The notes below the pieces were generated by a model. It saw only the letters and a program-made list of their open reading frames with translations, did not search any database and was not told the origin of the DNA. Shown in pieces: positions 3,171 to 19,297 of a stretch of 64,000 bases of DNA. The translations under genes and the position numbers were made by a program. Source of the stretch: Ruditapes philippinarum (taxonomy: Eukaryota); contig NW_026855774.1 in the NCBI RefSeq assembly GCF_026571515.1, forward strand, positions 62,001 through 126,000. Direction: 5' to 3'. Position 1 is the first letter of the stretch. Each line of letters starts with the position of its first letter.

Positions 3171-4153
3171 TTATAGTTAATGTAGATTAGCAGCAGTTTT
3201 TGTGGTGCTTCATGAAGAGTTGTTTTAATCTGCCTACCAAATAAGATTTTTGTATGGTCATATTATCACACAATATATCATCATCACTTCATATGGGCAG
3301 TCACATTTGGACAGTATGTGTTTTACTGTCTGTGTTATTAATAGAAATATTTTTCTCTGAAAGTAACATGCCAAAAATTTATTTTGCTTGAATTATCATC
3401 TTGTGTTCTTCTATTAAAGTTATACAAATTATGTCCCAGGGATCATAAATCTTGCCCTCAGAATCACTTCGTTTATGTTGACTTGTTTAGTAAAATGTGT
3501 ACAATTTTTTTTGTGAGGAAGTACAAAGCTCAGAGCTGGTACTTGTAGAATCACCTTGTGATCCTCTACAGAAGTTATAATCATCTATGGGTCCAAATGT
3601 GCCCCGCCCTTGAGGTGACATACTTTACATAGACTTGTAAAGGAATTTACATGTGAAACTACAATGCAAGAGCTAAGATGTCTGTCACGTGGCATTGCCT
3701 AGTGGACCTCTGCAAATGTTTTATAAGAAGTGCCGAGTTCGAAAATGAAAACTTTTTTGTGTCACTTAGTTTATATGTATATACTTGTACTGAATAAAAT
3801 GTCTGAAAAGTACAATGCTCGGAACTTATGTATTATGCATGTAGTATCATTTTGTGGTCCTTTACGAACGTTAAAATGCCAAGAGCTTTAATATTTGCCA
3901 TGAAGCATTTGTAACAGACATCTACAAATAAGTCAAAAATTATGTACATTGGGTAAAAAATGAGGAAAAAAAATGACATTACCGACTTTGGCATTGAAAA
4001 TAAAACATTAACTTCTTTATTTTAGAAAAGTAAATAGCCATTTAAACAAATACATTTTAAATATGCATGCCTAAATAAAATGATAAACTGACACACCAGA
4101 TTTATATTTATTTGAATTAATGAGGATGAAACCATTTTATTCATTTCCGTAAA

Positions 4154-5893
4154 TCAAGGTTGGTTAATGTTCAGAAATCCTATCCTCTCCAACACCTGTA
4201 AAATAAAGAAAGATAATAACAGATATCAGCAGATTGTCATCTATATGGTCATAACAGGTTAATAAAAGTGTTATACTGGTTCTTTGTTATCTGATGTTTT
4301 AATTCGCCTATGATGTTTATAATAAGTTTTAATAAATGATACACGGTTTACCATGTTGCGCAATAAACAACATTTTCAGCGTAAACCCAGTACATAGAAT
4401 AAATCGTCAGAATATTTAGTCATAAAAGTAAGCCGGGACAATATACTAAGACACCAGAAGACTGACCTTGTCGTATTCCGCATCATATTCCTGTAGTGAT
4501 ATCTTGTTGTCTTTAGCTGTAAAGCACGAATGCAAGAGATTTTCAATTAACACCAAATGAAACTTTCAGCGCTATTAAGTGACATCAAATACAATATTAT
4601 AGAAAAATGATAAACTAAAGTTTTCTGACACAGAACGTGTTTAGTTTTCACAAGGATTTAAATTCAAGACGCCTAAAACAACACTGTAATGTGAATAAAA
4701 ACATGTTAGATTGCGGTTGATTACCCGTTGTGATTTAGACCAAGAAGTTTCAGACAGTTTGAAATACAAAGCGAACAAATTGTAAATCATCTACACTCCT
4801 AAAATACATTTATTGCCTAACAAAGTACTTCGTGCAAAGTTAAAAGACTGTTTTGTGTATCAAAATTGAATTCTTGAGTGAAACAGCTCTTTTTCTGCGA
4901 TATCAATACTGTAATGCAGTTTGTCTTCCACCACTGTTTCATTTGATCGATGTAGGTAGTTGACATGCATTTGTAGATACATTGTTAATGAATACCGCTC
5001 CTTAACTGTCCGTTGCTATATAACCGAAATACTTATAAACCGGAAGTACCCAACAAAAGCAAGACGGTGACATTTGATAAGAAAGAGCATATTTCATGTT
5101 AACCTTTTGAATAACATTATTTACTTACGATTGACGTCAATCTCGTGGAATTCAGCTATATCATCTTCCACCTCGATACAACCATCACTGTTATGATCAA
5201 AGTGGTTAAATAATTCCCATTCGAATTTGAGTGAATCACTTGAATGCGATGAAAAAAACTCGGCCTGTGTAACGCAACCATCCTCTGAAACATGAAACTT
5301 AAACCGTTTAACAATTTCTATCTGCTGAATTTATACAGTGGTTTGCCTGCTCTGAATATAAAACATACGGAATTTAAATATCTAAAATAAAGCTACCAAT
5401 AGTATAGAGCCTTGACGATATGGTGACATTGATCTATACTAATGGCAAATATTAATCACCTTTGTTTCCATCAGGAAAATGATAAGAAATGTGAAAAAGA
5501 TATATCAGTTTAACTGTTCAAGAAAAGATAAAAATACATATGTAAAGTTAATTCAAGTTAATTATTCGAAATTATTACTATCACAGTATATTCTAAACAA
5601 AATATTTACATTTTGCTTATAGTTTCCATTACACCATTGGTTAGTGGTAACAACTCTGTTAAATGAATTATTTTGAGAGAATGTAACGAAAATGATTAAG
5701 ATTAAAAAAGTGCATGAATTTATTACTGTTGGCATCCCACGAGGTTATTCTAGCTTCAAACTCCTGAAGATTTACAAAATTATTTTTGTCTGTATCAATG
5801 TCGTGAAACTCTTTGTTTAACTCAAAGTTCACTTCTGTCAAATTGTGTCCAAATGTTGCTAACAGCATCCTAAACAACAGCAACACGTTTCAT
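4154..5893 (-). CDS. Four-EF-hand calcium-binding protein, probably secreted (molluscan type)
   Basis: Exons (-) 5869-5727, 5284-5129, 4516-4467 and 4195-4154, all GT-AG with consistent phases. EF loops DTDKNNFVNLQE, DANKDGCVTQAE, DHNSDGCIEVED and DVNPKDNKISLQE; ends VLERIGFLNINQP*. The start is uncertain (ATG at 5868, or an out-of-frame ATG at 5893). Confidence 0.85.
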
Positions 5894-11357: not shown

Positions 11358-11779
11358 CTTAGTCTTCGAAGCTAGGAATCTAGGACTTACGCATGGCACA
11401 TCGTTTCATCATGGTGCTTAAATGTGTGCCAGGTTATTGCAAAATGTCTTGACTCATGACAGAGATATGGAACGGACAAAGTTTTTGAACACACGGACGC
11501 ACTAGCGCACACAGGAACGGACGGACAGTGATAACACTATATGTGCCCTTTGCTGGCATTAAAAGATGATTATCAAAAAATCTTACGTGACCATTATAAC
11601 GACTTAAAACTCAAAACAAAGTGGCTTATCTTCGAAATCATGTAACATTGGGCCTTGTCCAAAAACAGTAAATGGTTTGCAGACCTTTTTAGCCTGACAT
11701 CATGACAAAAACAACATTTGTTAAGATCCCAGGAGGACTGATATCTGTCATAAAGTATTATGAAAACAGATACTACTAG

Positions 11780-11835
11780 TATATAAGGCATCCTGTATTG
11801 ATTAAAACAACACCAACGTAAATTGAATCAACAAG
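11780..11835 (+). promoter_or_regulatory. TATA box and putative non-coding first exon of the BRICHOS gene
   Basis: TATATAA at 11780-11786, a perfect donor AAG|GTAAGT after 11835, and an acceptor TTTTTTCAG ending 12445, 13 nt before the ATG. Confidence 0.55.
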
Positions 11836-12458
11836 GTAAGTTACCACTACTTGTTTTGAAATCTTAAATATTCTTTACTACAAACGTGTTAATGTTCGGT
11901 TTTAAATCTGTTTCATATTTAATTCTACATTAAATATATTGTTTCATATTTAATTCTACATTAAATATATATTGCATGCAGTACCTTTAAACTTGATTGT
12001 TAGGCTCCGCCTACTTAGTGTTCTGACTAATTGACTTCATATTGTTAGACAGTCTTAGAAATAAACTCATAGTATCAACATCTCGTAACTCTGCATCCAC
12101 ACCAAATAACAAACATAAAACAAAATCAGATATTCATCGTTCCATTTAGCTTTTTATACATAAGGACCTTAGTTTGATGTTTAATCGCCACTTTCAAGTT
12201 TATTCGACGCTGCAACATTTTCCTTTTTTGTCGTGTTGGGCGACCTTTAAGGTTTCAATTTTGGTTCACATTTGTATTTTAATATCAATTGTCGTGTCCC
12301 TACTATTAAATACAAATTGACAATTTACTTATTTGTTATTCTATTTACAAATATGTTATTAAATATATTATCTATCTATCAACAGAAAAAATATTTATTA
12401 TTTTTGAGACTTATTTGCGCTAAAACTAAAAACCTATTTTTTCAGTAAAGTGCCAGTC

Positions 12459-15400
12459 ATGTTGATGATTTATATAGCAGTTTTACTTCTTTTAGTTCCG
12501 GTGGCGAGCGCAGTGTTGGAGGTAAAGGATTATATTTTACAATATTTCATTTAATACGTCTGTTTTGAAGGTTGATTTTAAAATATTAGAAACAATATGA
12601 TACAGATCAAAACTATGTGGCATTAAATTTATAATAAGGACACTGAAAAATATAATGGAACTAATCACCTAAAAAAGAATTATTTGGACAGAGATGATTT
12701 TGATCCAAACTTTTCAATAGGGAGTTGGTTTTATTCATACTGATTACACTTCGGTTGATTTTCGGAAAGTTCCGTAAAATGCTCGCTGTACTTAATTTGT
12801 ATCTATGAACTAAGTGTACTGAGCGTTATAGCGCACGAATTTATAATGTAAGGGCCATACATGTTATAAGTTCGAGACCGCGTTGGTCCATGTTTTTTCC
12901 TTATTAATACTTTCATTATTAAAGCTACATATGATTATTGTTCGTTTTGTTTTATTATGTTTTACATAATTTTGTAAAGTCTATACTCTTTTCAAATAAC
13001 ATGTTTTAAGAATTCATGTTTAAAATTAAAACGGATTAAAATCAATACTACAAATCGGTTCCATTAAAATATACTGCAAAAATAAAGAGAGAGTAAAGCC
13101 TAAAAGAATGTCATCAGTAAGGATCGAACCACAAACCTCTCAATTATCATGCATTCGCTATTGTGAATTAACGAAAACCTTCACATTAAGCTGGCCTGAC
13201 TTTCAAAATATGACTAATATACTCCATATTAATTCTCGTAAACTACACGGACTAAACCGAAGTGGGGTCGAAGATTTAAATGAGTACTAATGTATTCATA
13301 ATTGGCAGGCCAATAAAATCAGACAATACTACATCTAAACATACACAGCGACAGGCTAGATTTCTTGGTAAAAGTTTGAAATAGGGTTTTAACTCAAATG
13401 AGGATTTAAAAATTCTGTAAGTGATACATTTGCTAAAGTTAAGCACCTGTTCATGCCATTTGAACATATTTGAAGCTACATTTGACAATATTTTAAAAAA
13501 ACACAGATTGGTTTATCCAGTATTCAGCAAAACCAAGCTCTTGCAATGATTTTTAATATAAGCTATCCATGGGGATTGATGTACATTTTTGACGGTCCAA
13601 TTCAAACAACAGTTTGTACATAATATTATATACTTTATCAGGTTTTGAATTAATGGTTTTGCACCAAAATTTAGGACTCTCCATTTCATGACACAATCAA
13701 TTGGAAGAAGTACCAAGCTCCCCAAACACTAGGAGTGGACTTTTTCCCTTTCATTATGAGTTTAAGATATATCAACTGAAACTGTTTTACAATATCAATG
13801 TTACCTACACCCCACATTACTACACTATGTAACAAAATAGGAGTGACCATAGAGTCAAAAAGTTGTAATTGTTTATCTGTATCAAGACTGATTTTTAAGT
13901 ACAGCAAACGCAGCTTTTCTAGCTTGGTCACAAAGGTATTTAGTAGTTTTATTGAACTTACCATTAAAATTAAACTAACACCTAAGTAGCTAAAATCCTC
14001 CACAATATCAAGTATGGCATTGTTAAAGTAAAAAGGTGTATTTGTACATTTCCCTTTTGAAAAAATTACAACTTTAGTTTTGGAATGATTAAGTTTTGTC
14101 GTAATGGAATGGGGCTTCATACAAAGCGAATACAAGACACGTAAATATGTCATACAATCCCCATAGAACTTTTGTTGTGCTTTTGTGTTTTCTGCTATTT
14201 GCTTTTTCGCGATGCCAAAAGAAGATATAAATATATAAGCTTTAAACAATAAAAGAATACCATCAAATCATCACGTTCCTGAATTTGATCAGGACATTTA
14301 TGATAATTTATAATTTCAGACTAACCACCTTATTCAAATTGACAATGATGGCCGTAAAGTGTCTATGGATGTCACATATGACTCGGACAAAAACACCGTC
14401 CATGTTGTAATCGGGGATGTGTCCATGTACAAACAGGGTGTCCAGACTGTGAATCTTCACGATTATAATACTGTAAGGAAGATGCGCAAAAGCTTTACCC
14501 ATCTCAAAAAAAAATTGAACTACTATAGAACCTTACATTTTTGCATTATAAAGAACAATAATTATCTAAATGACTACATATATTTTATGCTCACATAATG
14601 TAAAGCTTTGTCAGGTTATTTTTAAACAAAGAATAAAACTACTACCTATTACGTGCAACCACTTTAATTCATGTGCTTGTTTACTAAATATTACAATTAC
14701 TAACTGTTTACTTATCTACAGGGTTACGGAGTTTTAAAGAACATTAATGACAGAATATGTCTTCTAGGACGTGCACCATTCCCAAAGGCAACACCTGAAA
14801 AATACAGAGTCGTAAGTTGTTGAAAAAGTACCCACATTAGATTTCCAAAAAGGAACACGTTTTGTAGCAACTTTCTGTCTGTTAGAGTAAAATTTCTTTG
14901 AAATCAATTAAAATTTTGTATTTGTGCACGAGTGTTAATACTACGTACAGTAGGAACTTAAGTTTCACTTGCATTGTTTAATGTCAAGAAATAAGTCAAA
15001 TTAATTTAATTTTCTTCAGCTTTAAAATTCACTTTTTTATATATATATAAATGTTTAACACAAACGATATACATAACTAGACTGACGATGATACAGTCGG
15101 TATGATGCGTGCGCTACTGTAATGAGTTATGACATACATTTACATTATTTAGGGATTAACTCACGAAGTTTATGACCATTTGCTGGACATCAATTCTACC
15201 CGACTAACACTTGACGAGATTAATACTGTTGCTGGACCAAATATTGCCACCTTCTGCAAGACATATTCAACTTACTACGTGACAGCGACACCTTTACACA
15301 GGAATGCAAGAGGTGAATATATTATTAGTAATAAAGATCGCTGACAGGTTATATGGCCCTTTATTAAATAACTATACGTTATTCAGTCCTGTAAAAAAAT

Positions 15401-17933
15401 GTACCTGCCACGTTCAATAACACGATGGCCTGCCTTAAAACAGGGCCAATATCTATATTACTTTTTTATGAACCCTATATTTTGTTACTTAATGTAATTC
15501 TCACAAAAATGTAGAGTAGGATTCTCTATTAATCGATTAAAGCAACAATAAAACAACATTTTCTTATATTTATTTTGTGTTGTCTTGTTTTCTAAGTTAA
15601 TTGGAGAGTTAAATTGTACAGTATCATGAGTATGACCACAGGAGATTGACATTCTTAGCTAGATATCAATAATTGAAAGATATACGCAAATAATTAAAAA
15701 AATAACGGCAAATGTACCCCTCTATACTATAAATAAACACAGAGGGGTACATTTGCATGTTCGTGAAGTTAGCCAGACAGCCGGAACAGCCAGAACTCAT
15801 TTTCGTCCGGAATCCGTTTCCGGCTATACAGGCTGGCCAGAGATGATAGGGTAAAACCTGTGAAAATTCCATTGGCTAATACCATAATGTAATTGTCAAA
15901 TTATTTATCACAACGATCTCCGGCTATTACGGCTAGCAAGAAAAACAGAAATCAAGGCTACATAAGATGAAAAAAAAATCCGACAGCAGATTGAAGAATA
16001 TATATGTGTCGTGCATTGTGGGTCCGAAATCGGCTGGCCCCTGTGGGGACCAGACTCAATTACGCAGAACCGCACATGGTGGGATGGTTAGGGGGTCTGA
16101 CCAGGTGTCCGCGGGTAAAGGTGTGTCCGTCGGGAATACTCTGGTATTTTGCCGACGTCGAGCCGAAAATTATTTGCTTATATCTTTCATGTCAATCTCC
16201 TGTGGTATGACAGATATTTGTTTACATTGACAACTGTCCGTTTCTTAGAAAGGGCGACAACCAAGATTAGCGGATATGTCTAAACGCCGTATTTCGGACA
16301 TAGGTATTATTTAGATGTTAATACTTGGTTGCTGCTCGCCATTATGCGATAATGACCCTCCAGTTCATAATGTCCTTCGGGCCTGCGGCCCTCAGACCAT
16401 TATTCACATCTTCGGGCCATTATCGCATAATGGCGAGCAGCAACCAAGACAGTATTAACCTCTAGATATAAACGTCACGGTTATCCAATGAATAGCGACG
16501 TTACAATTTAAACGTGCAGTATTATAACAGGGTCTTTCAAATAGAAAATCTATTTGAAAGACCCTGATTATAGTAAACGTTTATAAACTCCATTTTTTTA
16601 AAGAAAACATAACCGGTCTAAAAATTGAAATTGTAGAGTTATATAAGGTAGTCTATCGAATTATGCGAAGTTTATAACATATATGCCATAATTGACAACG
16701 ATGGATCATTATTGTGATTTGAACAGTAAAATTTAAGTTTAATATTATTTTGTTTGTTTTGCTTCTTTGAAGAACATTTTTTACGCGCAATGGCAATACA
16801 GACATAATGAGAATGGCAGCGAGTCAATGACTATCGTACAAATTGACTATGGTCAAAGTTGATAATTACAACAGACTGATACTATACATCAAATTCAGCT
16901 CTTAACAATGTACATCATATATTTCACAGATTTTTGGTGAAAGTGAAAGAAAATTCTTTAAAGACGTATACATCTCTTTAAAGAGATCCATGAAGTAATG
17001 TAGCTGAATGAAAACTGCATGATAGTATTCATGTAAATTGTGCATGATCTTATGTTATCATATTCTAAGATCATTGAAATTTTCAATAAATTCTGTTAAG
17101 AAGCTTTCAACTGCTATATCGCTATATGATACACTAGCATACGCTTTTACGGCTCTCATATATATTGGCGTTAAAAAAGGACCATGTACGTTTATATGAA
17201 TTGGAAAATTTTCACAAGTTTTTGCAGACGAAGAATTTCTGTTTGCAATAACAATGCTCATGGTATAATGATTTTTCAAATTAAATGTAATGCGGTTAAA
17301 TATTAGAACCAGCTAGATGTTTGAGGAATAAAAAAGGAAGACAACGTTTTTTCCAAGTAAATATAAACCCGAATGCTGGGATAATATCTCATCAGCACAG
17401 TGTCTTTGTAATTTCAGCCATCGACTCTTCCAATACTGGTACTGAACTGAGTTTTTGGTGTGTGTTATCTAATTGTCCATCAGATAGGGAACAGTATCAA
17501 CAACTTTTGAGGAATAATTGATTTGTTTTCAAAATCTTCAATAAACTTTTACTTTGAAAGAGATGACTTTTCTTTATATCAGAGCGTACAAGAAAATTCT
17601 TGCTCGCTCGTTTTATATCGATCAATGTATTTTCAGCACTTAGACCGTCATATCACGACGCCAAAGAGCAGAGATTATGGTGCATTGGTACTTCTTGTAT
17701 AATTGATAGCATTTTGTTGGTATAAACTTCTTTTTGACAAACAACTGACTTGTTCTTAACTTTTTTGCTTTATAGGACATATAACGTATATCAGTATAAT
17801 CAGCACAATGACTTTTGTAATTTCAGCACTAGAACAGTCTAATCCCGACACAGAACCACAGACAATATGGTGTGTGGCCTCTAGCTGTATTACAAATAGT
17901 AACCAGTATCAACAGATATTGACGACCAAGTGA
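12459..17933 (+). CDS. Secreted BRICHOS-domain propeptide precursor with three alternative terminal exons
   Basis: Exons 12459-12521 (signal peptide MLMIYIAVLLLLVPVASA), 14320-14472, 14722-14811 and 15153-15312, then a phase-1 last exon at 17418-17521, 17637-17725 or 17827-17933. BRICHOS hallmarks LHDYNTGYGVLKNINDRICLL and GPNIATFCKTYSTYYV carry the conserved Asp and two Cys. The common part is 155 aa and ends HRNAR. Confidence 0.8.
13290..14100 (-). mobile_element. Decayed non-LTR retrotransposon (ORF2 C-terminal part) in a BRICHOS intron
   Basis: LNHSKTKVVIF..VEDFSYLGV..QLFDSMVTPILLHSVVMWG, with frameshifts. Confidence 0.75.
16313..16463. mobile_element. Long-hairpin end of an element spanning about 15660-16465
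   Basis: Arms GTTAATACT..TTGGTTGCTGCTCGCCATTATGCGATAATG and CATTATCGCATAATGGCGAGCAGCAACCAA..AGTATTAAC; apex GGGCCTGCGGCCCTC. Confidence 0.75.
17418..17521 (+). CDS. BRICHOS gene alternative last exon A: (A)IDSSNTGTELSFWCVLSNCPSDREQYQQLLRNN*
   Basis: Acceptor TTTGTAATTTCAG, phase 1, open to TGA; AATAAA at 17540. Confidence 0.7.
17637..17725 (+). CDS. BRICHOS gene alternative last exon B: (A)LRPSYHDAKEQRLWCIGTSCIIDSILLV*
   Basis: Acceptor TGTATTTTCAG, phase 1, same WCx4C motif. Confidence 0.6.
17827..17933 (+). CDS. BRICHOS gene alternative last exon C: (A)LEQSNPDTEPQTIWCVASSCITNSNQYQQILTTK*
   Basis: Acceptor TTTTGTAATTTCAG, phase 1; AATAAA at 17953 and 17998. Confidence 0.72.
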
Positions 17934-19297
17934 TATTATCTATGAAGTTTATAATAAATGTCATGTTGAATCAGATGTTTTACATTACAATTCAGTTAAT
18001 AAACAGAAAGTGAAGAAAATTTGTCACCACGTTATCAAGTTATAACAATGCCACATTAACAAATGAAATGTGTAGATGCGTTTTTTTTTTCATGGCAGAA
18101 AAATAGAAATGAATGATACGAGAAGAAGATAAATACTTTCATTTTTATTATCGAAAACAATCTTCTAGTCTTGAAAGAATGTTTTATGGGTTGGTTTCTA
18201 ATTGCAAATATAAAGAAACGTGTGAAAAAGCAAGTTAATTTTCAACCCCTTCTTATTTTATTGTTTTACAAATTATTTGTTCTAACTATGTAATTGTAAT
18301 GTGGTATATGTTGTATAAGGATCATCCGATAAAATGTTCTTTCAGAAATACAATGCATTTTAGGAGATAATTAGCTTAAATAAGATGTTTAAAATTCAAA
18401 AGTCTGTTTGTTGCATAGCTTCCATTTTGATTTAAATAGAAAATGTTATAATAATATTTTTATTTCAAGAAGTCAAAAGTCAAGTCACATGAACACAACA
18501 AACAACATATCTTAATATTCATTATTATTCAAAAAAGAAAAACAAAACACACACAAACAAACAAACAAAAAACTACTAATATATAGAGTCAATTTGAATT
18601 ACAACAAACATGATTTGATTGATTTTACACTCTTTTAAAAATATATCATTTGTATAATTTTCAATAACTGAAAACTGAATATATTACGAATATAAATGTT
18701 ATATCATCATAAATACAAAGTTTATTAAGATGAGTTTTATGCAAAAGACAGTATCATTTGATTTGCAATATATGCTTTCTGTATTTATATTTTAAAGATG
18801 CCAGTGAATTAATGGATCGGATATTATATGGTATTGAATTCCGAACCTTTGTAGAAGTGTAGTAAAAATCTTAATGTCATAATTTGTATAAATAAGCCAT
18901 CATGTGAAGCAGATATTAAAGTTTTAATTTCATTGCTGGAATAAGTCAAAAATTCAGATACATAAGAAGGCGCTAGGTTGTTACAAGCTTAATAAATAAG
19001 ATTCCCAAGTATGAATTTTATATGCTTATTGAATCGCCTGGTAACTTATCTGTATAACGCAGGGTAACGCGGAGTTCTAAGCTATATCCGATGGTGTTAT
19101 CCTCTTTTTAAATGTTGTTGTACATATTTCCTGAGAACGAGTTTTAGCTTCGGAAATTTGATTTAAGACTCGCAACACATGTACCAAAAAATCTCATTAT
19201 CAGACAGCTAGAGCATATTAACAAGTATTTTAGGCCAGTGTGTATGTAATCTAACTTGAAGCATTATACGCGCTGAAAGCACGCACAGGAATTATCA

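Follow-up and report, generated by a model that had tools for sequence, protein, structure and literature searches.

A probable choice between two tail exons behind one gastrokine-like BRICHOS body in the clam Ruditapes philippinarum

Results

Organization of the gene

The DNA examined here, a stretch of 64,000 nucleotides from the clam Ruditapes philippinarum (assembly GCF_026571515.1, contig NW_026855774.1, positions 62,001 to 126,000 of the forward strand; called the window below, with position 1 as its first letter), carries on its plus strand the gene LOC132744322, made up of five exons (four for the body and one tail), whose product has the RefSeq name 'uncharacterized protein'. An initial annotation had proposed that this gene supplies one BRICHOS chaperone with three swappable cargo peptides by means of tandem alternative last exons. 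Direct reading and translation of the coding exons at 12459-12521, 14320-14472, 14722-14811, and 15153-15312, all of which have canonical AG/GT borders, gave a common body of 155 residues (21 + 51 + 30 + 53) with the C-terminal end ..PLHRNAR. With the G at position 15312 a split codon begins, and GT comes next, which makes this site a phase-1 donor. About 2.1 kb 3′ of the body, three tail exons, designated A, B, and C, start at 17418, 17637, and 17827, each directly after TTTCAG; each contributes a CC or CA that finishes an Ala codon and then stays open to its own stop. The coordinates, donor, three acceptors, stops, and translations given in the initial annotation were exact to the base. The features of the gene are as follows.

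11780 to 11835, plus strand: putative promoter and short non-coding first exon as judged from the sequence, with a TATA-box-like TATATAAG at 11780-11787 and a strong donor, AAG/GTAAGT, after 11835
12446 to 12521, plus strand: first coding exon, with the acceptor ttttttcag just 5′ of 12446, 13 nucleotides (nt) upstream of the ATG at 12459, a hydrophobic, signal-peptide-like start of 21 residues, and a phase-0 donor GT at 12522
14320 to 14472, plus strand: coding exon 2 (51 residues), for the predicted N-terminal strands of the extended BRICHOS fold; the most conserved exon of the family
14722 to 14811, plus strand: coding exon 3, 30 residues, carrying the invariant Cys85
15153 to 15312, plus strand: coding exon 4, 53 residues plus one base, with the invariant Cys137 and the end ..RNAR followed by the phase-1 donor G/GT
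15313 to 17417, plus strand: intron 4, 2.1 kb, with transposon-like inserts
17418 to 17545, plus strand: tail exon A, a 34-residue tail including the split Ala, TGA at 17519-21, AATAAA at 17540-45; tail of isoform X2
17637 to 17725, plus strand: tail exon B, a 29-residue tail, TAA at 17723-25, lacking its own poly(A) signal and the C-terminal QYQQ part; in no annotated isoform
17827 to 18003, plus strand: tail exon C, a 35-residue tail, TGA at 17931-33, AATAAA at 17953-58 and 17998-18003; tail of isoform X1

Homology of the tail exons and their use in annotated isoforms

When the tail exons were compared by tblastn in a search space of about 120 kb, A matched C with an E value of about 8e-6 and B matched C with one of about 3e-4. 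Their likeness is beyond chance, and A, B, and C are homologous. The copies have 42-45% protein identity and have all retained the acceptor, the frame, and the motif W-C-x4-C; A and C in addition have QYQQ and the upstream intronic ATCAGCACA..TTTGTAATTTCAG in common. Each of these two also has its own AATAAA, lying at homologous positions 19-22 nt past the stops of A (17540) and C (17953). All of these shared features had been described in the initial annotation and were found again here. As AWTAAA was about as common in the AT-rich window as in shuffled sequence (398 found versus 390 expected), the presence of such a signal proves little, and it is the homologous position that counts. A search for AWTAAA from 17546 to 17952 found none, so B has no signal of its own. 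The three copies differ from one another by about 30% in DNA, which rules out an assembly artefact. There is a single body on the contig, which likewise rules out a chimera of tandem genes; a weak 'WC..C' match at window positions 3191-3226 (E 0.2-0.9) was taken as chance.

Two RefSeq isoforms correspond to this arrangement. XP_060588983.1 (isoform X2) consists of the four body exons and exon A, and XP_060588982.1 (isoform X1), which falls in the same protein cluster, of the body and exon C; the two are identical over their first 156 residues, including residues 1-21 from the first coding exon, and then switch to their respective tails. Exons A and C thus show the layout of alternative last exons, that is, one donor and at least two acceptors, behind each of which come a separate stop and poly(A) signal; in B the acceptor and stop are present and a separate signal is missing. 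Of the three swappable peptides originally proposed, therefore, A and C are modelled in RefSeq as alternative tails, whereas B occurs in no model, giving two at most.

Could B nevertheless be used, so that all three exons serve as tails, with B joined through its acceptor at 17637 and transcription reading through to the poly(A) signals behind C? B is old and divergent and yet keeps the TTTCAG acceptor, the phase, a 29-codon open frame, and W-C-x4-C, and against the other copies it has a proportion of non-synonymous differences (pN) of 0.38-0.51 and a ratio of non-synonymous to synonymous divergence (omega) of 0.37-0.56. Terminal exons that lack a poly(A) signal can rely on one further downstream, which also speaks for this possibility. 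On the other side, the poly(A) region conserved elsewhere is missing from B, and its early stop takes away the portion that forms the helix. A RefSeq model or database protein with a B tail was found neither in the cluster of A and C isoforms nor in the search for relatives, which would have picked up such a protein through the shared body. We regard use of all three tails as unlikely; most likely exon B is a decaying, or at best a minor, copy.

Divergence of the tail exons and the C6844 paralogue

The comparison of substitution rates that the initial annotation had suggested was carried out between the tail copies, and gave a proportion of synonymous differences (pS) of 0.54-0.71, which is saturated, a pN of 0.26-0.51, and an omega of 0.16-0.56, values that are noisy given the roughly 30 codons of each exon. 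Non-synonymous divergence was below synonymous divergence, with omega at a rough 0.3-0.4 over the three copies. A gene on contig C6844, LOC132752945, has a similar body and a single tail exon. With the codons of exons 2-4 summed, its body differed from that of LOC132744322 by a synonymous divergence (dS) of 0.57 and a non-synonymous divergence (dN) of 0.057 (omega 0.10); this dS rules out an allele and makes the C6844 gene a paralogue. Between tail C and the tail of the paralogue, dN was 0.31, so that at non-synonymous sites the rate of change of the tail is about five times that of the body. Among the three copies C is nearest to the paralogue's single tail, in the coding part and in the 3′ flank. 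The conserved 3′ flank that C and the paralogue tail have in common includes the poly(A) signal, which A keeps and B has lost.

These comparisons bear on the possibility that the tail exons are dead duplicates, with one of them really expressed and the second RefSeq isoform weakly supported or driven by homology. The other family genes examined in the clam genome each show one detectable tail exon, as this possibility would predict. In contrast, A and C have retained the acceptor, frame, motif, QYQQ part, and homologous poly(A) signal despite a saturated dS (>1), and similar tail-swapping isoforms are modelled in two Mytilus species. We therefore consider dead duplication improbable, even more so than the use of all three exons.

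Identity of the body as a BRICHOS domain

Exon 2 is present in seven copies in the clam genome, 45-88% identical. A profile of the seven, searched against a representative protein library, retrieved full-length proteins of about 185 residues, and searches with two of their relatives reached the RefSeq proteins of R. philippinarum. The 26 family members compared include proteins of Ruditapes, Mercenaria, Mytilus, Mya, and Dreissena. Membership of the Pfam family BRICHOS was defined by PF04089 at its gathering score of 25 bits. Sub-threshold matches to PF04089 were obtained in 21 of the 26 members (15.7-23 bits, E 9.2e-5 to 0.1), and they always spanned protein residues from about 60 to 145 and profile positions 5-91. 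When the exons were searched singly against Pfam there was no match, as expected for a domain split over three exons. Some of the Mytilus members carry the UniRef label 'BRICHOS domain-containing protein'. In the ESM Atlas, the ten best feature matches of isoform X2 that have a Pfam family all belonged to BRICHOS or its clan, and the top three were gastrokine clusters (score 0.93, with 203-208 of 256 features shared).

AlphaFold models of both isoforms had a confidence (pLDDT) of 87-88 and a pTM of 0.80. Their predicted elements begin with six strands, of which the first three are N-terminal, and continue with a helix, a long strand, a pair of short helices, and a last strand. The extended BRICHOS domain of members other than SP-C has a central sheet, two helices, and the extra strands 1′, 2′, and 4′ (Sanchez-Pulido and Ponting, PMC9714404), and the conserved residues of BRICHOS are an Asp, a Cys in strand 4, and a Cys at the short second helix (PMC9714404). 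Across 26-28 bivalve members, C85 and C137 are invariant and D69 nearly so. In the X2 model C85 lies within strand 84-89 and C137 right after the short helix 131-136; because the same is described in PMC9714404, this placement and the order of elements fit the extended BRICHOS topology. The protein also has the layout of a BRICHOS proprotein, with a hydrophobic N-terminus, a domain at 20-149, a linker, and a hairpin tail. It is thus very likely that the body is homologous to BRICHOS and of the gastrokine-like secreted type. The BRICHOS identity put forward initially is to this extent probable, if by indirect evidence, from the sub-threshold Pfam matches of the family, the ESM Atlas, and the AlphaFold topology, although the Pfam gathering score was not reached.

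Other searches added nothing to this identification. Foldseek against the PDB returned nothing at E ≤ 0.001, its best rows being ependymin-related proteins at E 6e-3 with poor root-mean-square deviation (rmsd). In the wide structural search Z was at most 5.8, and kinship to ependymin or LolA was not accepted. A phmmer search of PDB sequences with one family member gave chance-level rows only, and a homologue search with exon 4 alone yielded no candidates.

The junction and the tail

The exon boundary coincides with an RxxR site, as the initial annotation had noted, for RNAR lies at the junction of body and tail. In the models of both isoforms, the tail is predicted to form a hairpin around W-C-x4-C followed by a short helix, with pLDDT 77-92, and the linker with RNAR is their sole low-confidence part (pLDDT 52-60). 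Most members of the family have a basic pair or RxxR at this junction, and in Mytilus and Mya the site is R-x-K-R. In most BRICHOS proproteins, cleavage yields a polypeptide from the C-terminal end, and models put it in the binding groove (PMC9714404). By analogy with the family and with BRICHOS biology (PMC9714404), cleavage at RNAR with release of a free peptide would be a reasonable inference. The net charges of tails A, B, and C are −2, 0, and −2, neutral or acidic where a cationic hairpin would be positive; the tails are not arenicin-like antimicrobial peptides.

We also considered that the tail might instead be an integral hairpin-helix module of an intact, gastrokine-like secreted protein, the surface of which would be altered by the choice of exon. 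This concerns the fate of the tail alone; it is compatible with alternative use of the exons, and its probability is not to be set against theirs. Its appeal comes from the confident modelling of the tail within one compact chain in both isoforms, from the gastrokines as the closest feature matches, and from tails whose charge is unlike that of antimicrobial peptides; moreover, RNAR is a minimal furin motif only, and two Mercenaria relatives have no basic site at the junction at all. The basic pair in most members, the perfect R-x-K-R of Mytilus and Mya, the low confidence of this one stretch of the models, and the processing usual for BRICHOS proproteins (PMC9714404) point the other way, and we hold the integral tail to be possible but doubtful.

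Tail variation in other bivalves and in related clam genes

The RefSeq isoforms of other bivalves also vary in their tails. In Mytilus edulis, isoforms X1 and X2 share their sequence as far as ..FEYVA, beyond which they carry two different W-C-x4-C tails, and the same holds for X4 and X5, which have a second body; isoform X3 has an unrelated tail. Under this one gene, X1-X5 comprise two N-terminal bodies each joined to the same two alternative tails, which points to a locus in which several bodies share tail exons, or else to read-through between tandem genes. Isoforms X1 and X2 of M. californianus LOC127701608 differ only near the end of the tail, and the tail of X4 is unrelated, while the variation in Mya and Dreissena concerns a short spacer ahead of W-C, present in some isoforms and absent from others. 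The exchange of tails on an unchanged BRICHOS body may therefore characterize the family and not this clam gene alone.

Additional relatives were seen in the clam genome. A second subfamily, on contigs C268, C14040 (two copies), and C12006, has an exon 2 that is 45-47% identical and an exon 4 that ends ..KR in at least three of the four copies; its tail has a different cysteine pattern, C-x3-C-x-W-C in one member. Among the four, two copies showed one tail exon each, and in the others the stretch ended first or there was no match. A third relative, on contig C13971 (2349-4602 of its stretch), is 48-71% identical and has no basic site at the end of exon 4; its one tail exon, of the W-C-x4-C type, has R-K at the start instead.

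Other sequences within the introns

Intron 4 contains an element of about 516 bp at 15674-16189, the ends of which are 22-nt inverted repeats with 95% complementarity, and a separate 35-nt hairpin with 97% complementarity at 16324-16448; both are miniature-transposon-like. A tRNA-like piece of the short interspersed element (SINE) type in intron 1 (minus strand, about 13100-13270) has a second occurrence in intron 4 of the C6844 paralogue (about 5380-5560 of that paralogue's stretch). An open reading frame (ORF) of 187 residues in intron 1 (13686-14249, minus strand) appeared by eye to be a retroelement remnant and gave no Pfam match at E ≤ 0.01. A search of 11500-18500 with Rfam returned nothing at gathering score.

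Discussion

The explanation that we favor, and consider reasonably likely as a whole, is that LOC132744322 encodes a small secreted proprotein of about 190 residues, with a signal peptide, an extended gastrokine-like BRICHOS domain at about 20-150, a flexible RNAR linker, and a tail of 29-35 residues that comes wholly from the last exon; that this exon was triplicated in tandem within 520 bp; and that A and C are working alternative last exons, giving two tail peptides from one gene. We propose that the phase-1 donor at 15312 would be spliced to the proximal copy A, with cleavage of the transcript at A's own poly(A) signal, or alternatively would skip to the distal copy C, so that the same body would receive a different tail. 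Other BRICHOS proproteins suggest what would follow: the body would keep hold of the beta-prone tail on its way through secretion, and cleavage after RNAR by a furin-type convertase would set the tail free.

Several results weigh against this explanation. With respect to the domain, the Pfam search and structure prediction that had been suggested were run on the RefSeq protein containing the body, and although the model fits the extended BRICHOS topology, isoform X2 had no PF04089 match at E ≤ 0.1 and so falls outside the strict Pfam definition; every PF04089 match in the family was below the gathering score. The solved BRICHOS structures, which are truncated, align weakly and in the range of noise (2yad, Z 3.7, 70 of 77 residues, rmsd 3.8; 8rnu, Z 4.3), and rows for ependymin and LolA (Z 5-5.8), likewise in the noise range, rank above them. 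An hmmsearch of PDB sequences with the family profile gave chance-level rows only. With respect to the tail, its cysteines are predicted to lie in or beside the first hairpin strand (166 and 171 with strand 165-170 in X2; 167 and 172 with strand 167-171 in X1), a placement that sits uneasily with a closed C-x4-C disulfide loop, and the two Mercenaria junctions without a basic site count against release. With respect to exon use, the NCBI annotation pipeline builds alternative variants from aligned evidence, and it is from this practice that we infer RNA support for X1 and X2, both known here as RefSeq models.

The logic of alternative last exons is familiar from the calcitonin/CGRP gene (CALCA), in which the N-terminal part of the precursor is common to all products and splicing joins it to one or another terminal exon, each of which has a poly(A) site of its own, so that the mature peptides differ. 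The clam gene resembles CALCA in this respect; the exons of CALCA, however, are not tandem duplicates and follow no BRICHOS body, whereas the clam alternatives are paralogous copies of a single exon. The gastrokines GKN1, GKN2, and GKN3 resemble the clam protein in having a signal peptide, an extended BRICHOS domain, and a short C-terminal part in about 185 residues. They differ from it in being vertebrate stomach proteins without a W-C-x4-C tail, and their sequence similarity to it is sub-threshold; we know of no tandem alternative tail exons in gastrokines. The core domain of GKN2, residues 20-151 (PMC9714404), spans the same range as the clam domain. ITM2B/Bri2 is likewise a BRICHOS proprotein from which furin cleavage yields a short C-terminal peptide with one disulfide, and AlphaFold puts that peptide in the groove (PMC9714404); in contrast to the clam protein it is a type II membrane protein and has one tail exon, and its structural match is weak (8rnu, as above).

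The polychaete precursors (arenicins, alvinellacin, nicomicins, capitellacin, and the HfBRI peptides) are lophotrochozoan, as the clam gene is, and similarly combine BRICHOS with a C-terminal Cys-stabilised beta-hairpin after a basic site (PMC9756803, PMC10745061). The polychaete peptides are cationic and membranolytic, unlike the clam tails with their charges of −2, 0, and −2. BRICHOS peptides have been described as limited to polychaetes (PMC9756803), and polychaete peptide variants have been reported as separate transcripts or families, with no naming of alternative exons (PMC9756803, PMC10745061). One unnamed 'BRICHOS domain-containing protein' is listed in a mussel expression table (PMC4203926).

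Our literature search found no mention of the LOC132744322 locus or of BRICHOS alternative tail exons. The initial annotation was right, as far as the ORF track goes, that none of these exons can be seen there as a gene, but the gene and two of its isoforms were already in RefSeq. We therefore regard the finding as moderately novel, in that we found no literature description of the arrangement, the sequences themselves being already in RefSeq. A wider generalization can be put forward tentatively: through arrays of alternative terminal exons, bivalves in general may equip a single BRICHOS body with a variety of W-C-x4-C disulfide-loop peptides; clams and mussels would either have conserved such arrays or have evolved them more than once, with regulation by tissue or challenge, and the non-cationic peptides might then form a new signalling or defence family. 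We think it doubtful that this holds in full.

The value of the finding is limited for now, in that the isoforms are already in RefSeq and that their expression, cleavage, and peptide activity are putative. BRICHOS proproteins have been studied as one domain with one aggregation-prone client. If the explanation given here is true, the same domain would be found with two or three diverged clients by choice of exon, and client specificity could be studied in an experiment that nature has already made. The range of BRICHOS-linked peptides would widen from polychaetes to include bivalves, the bivalve peptides being of another kind, non-cationic, and the secreted peptides of clams and mussels would then have diversified by an unnoticed route, beside the well-known variation in gene copies and in gene presence and absence.

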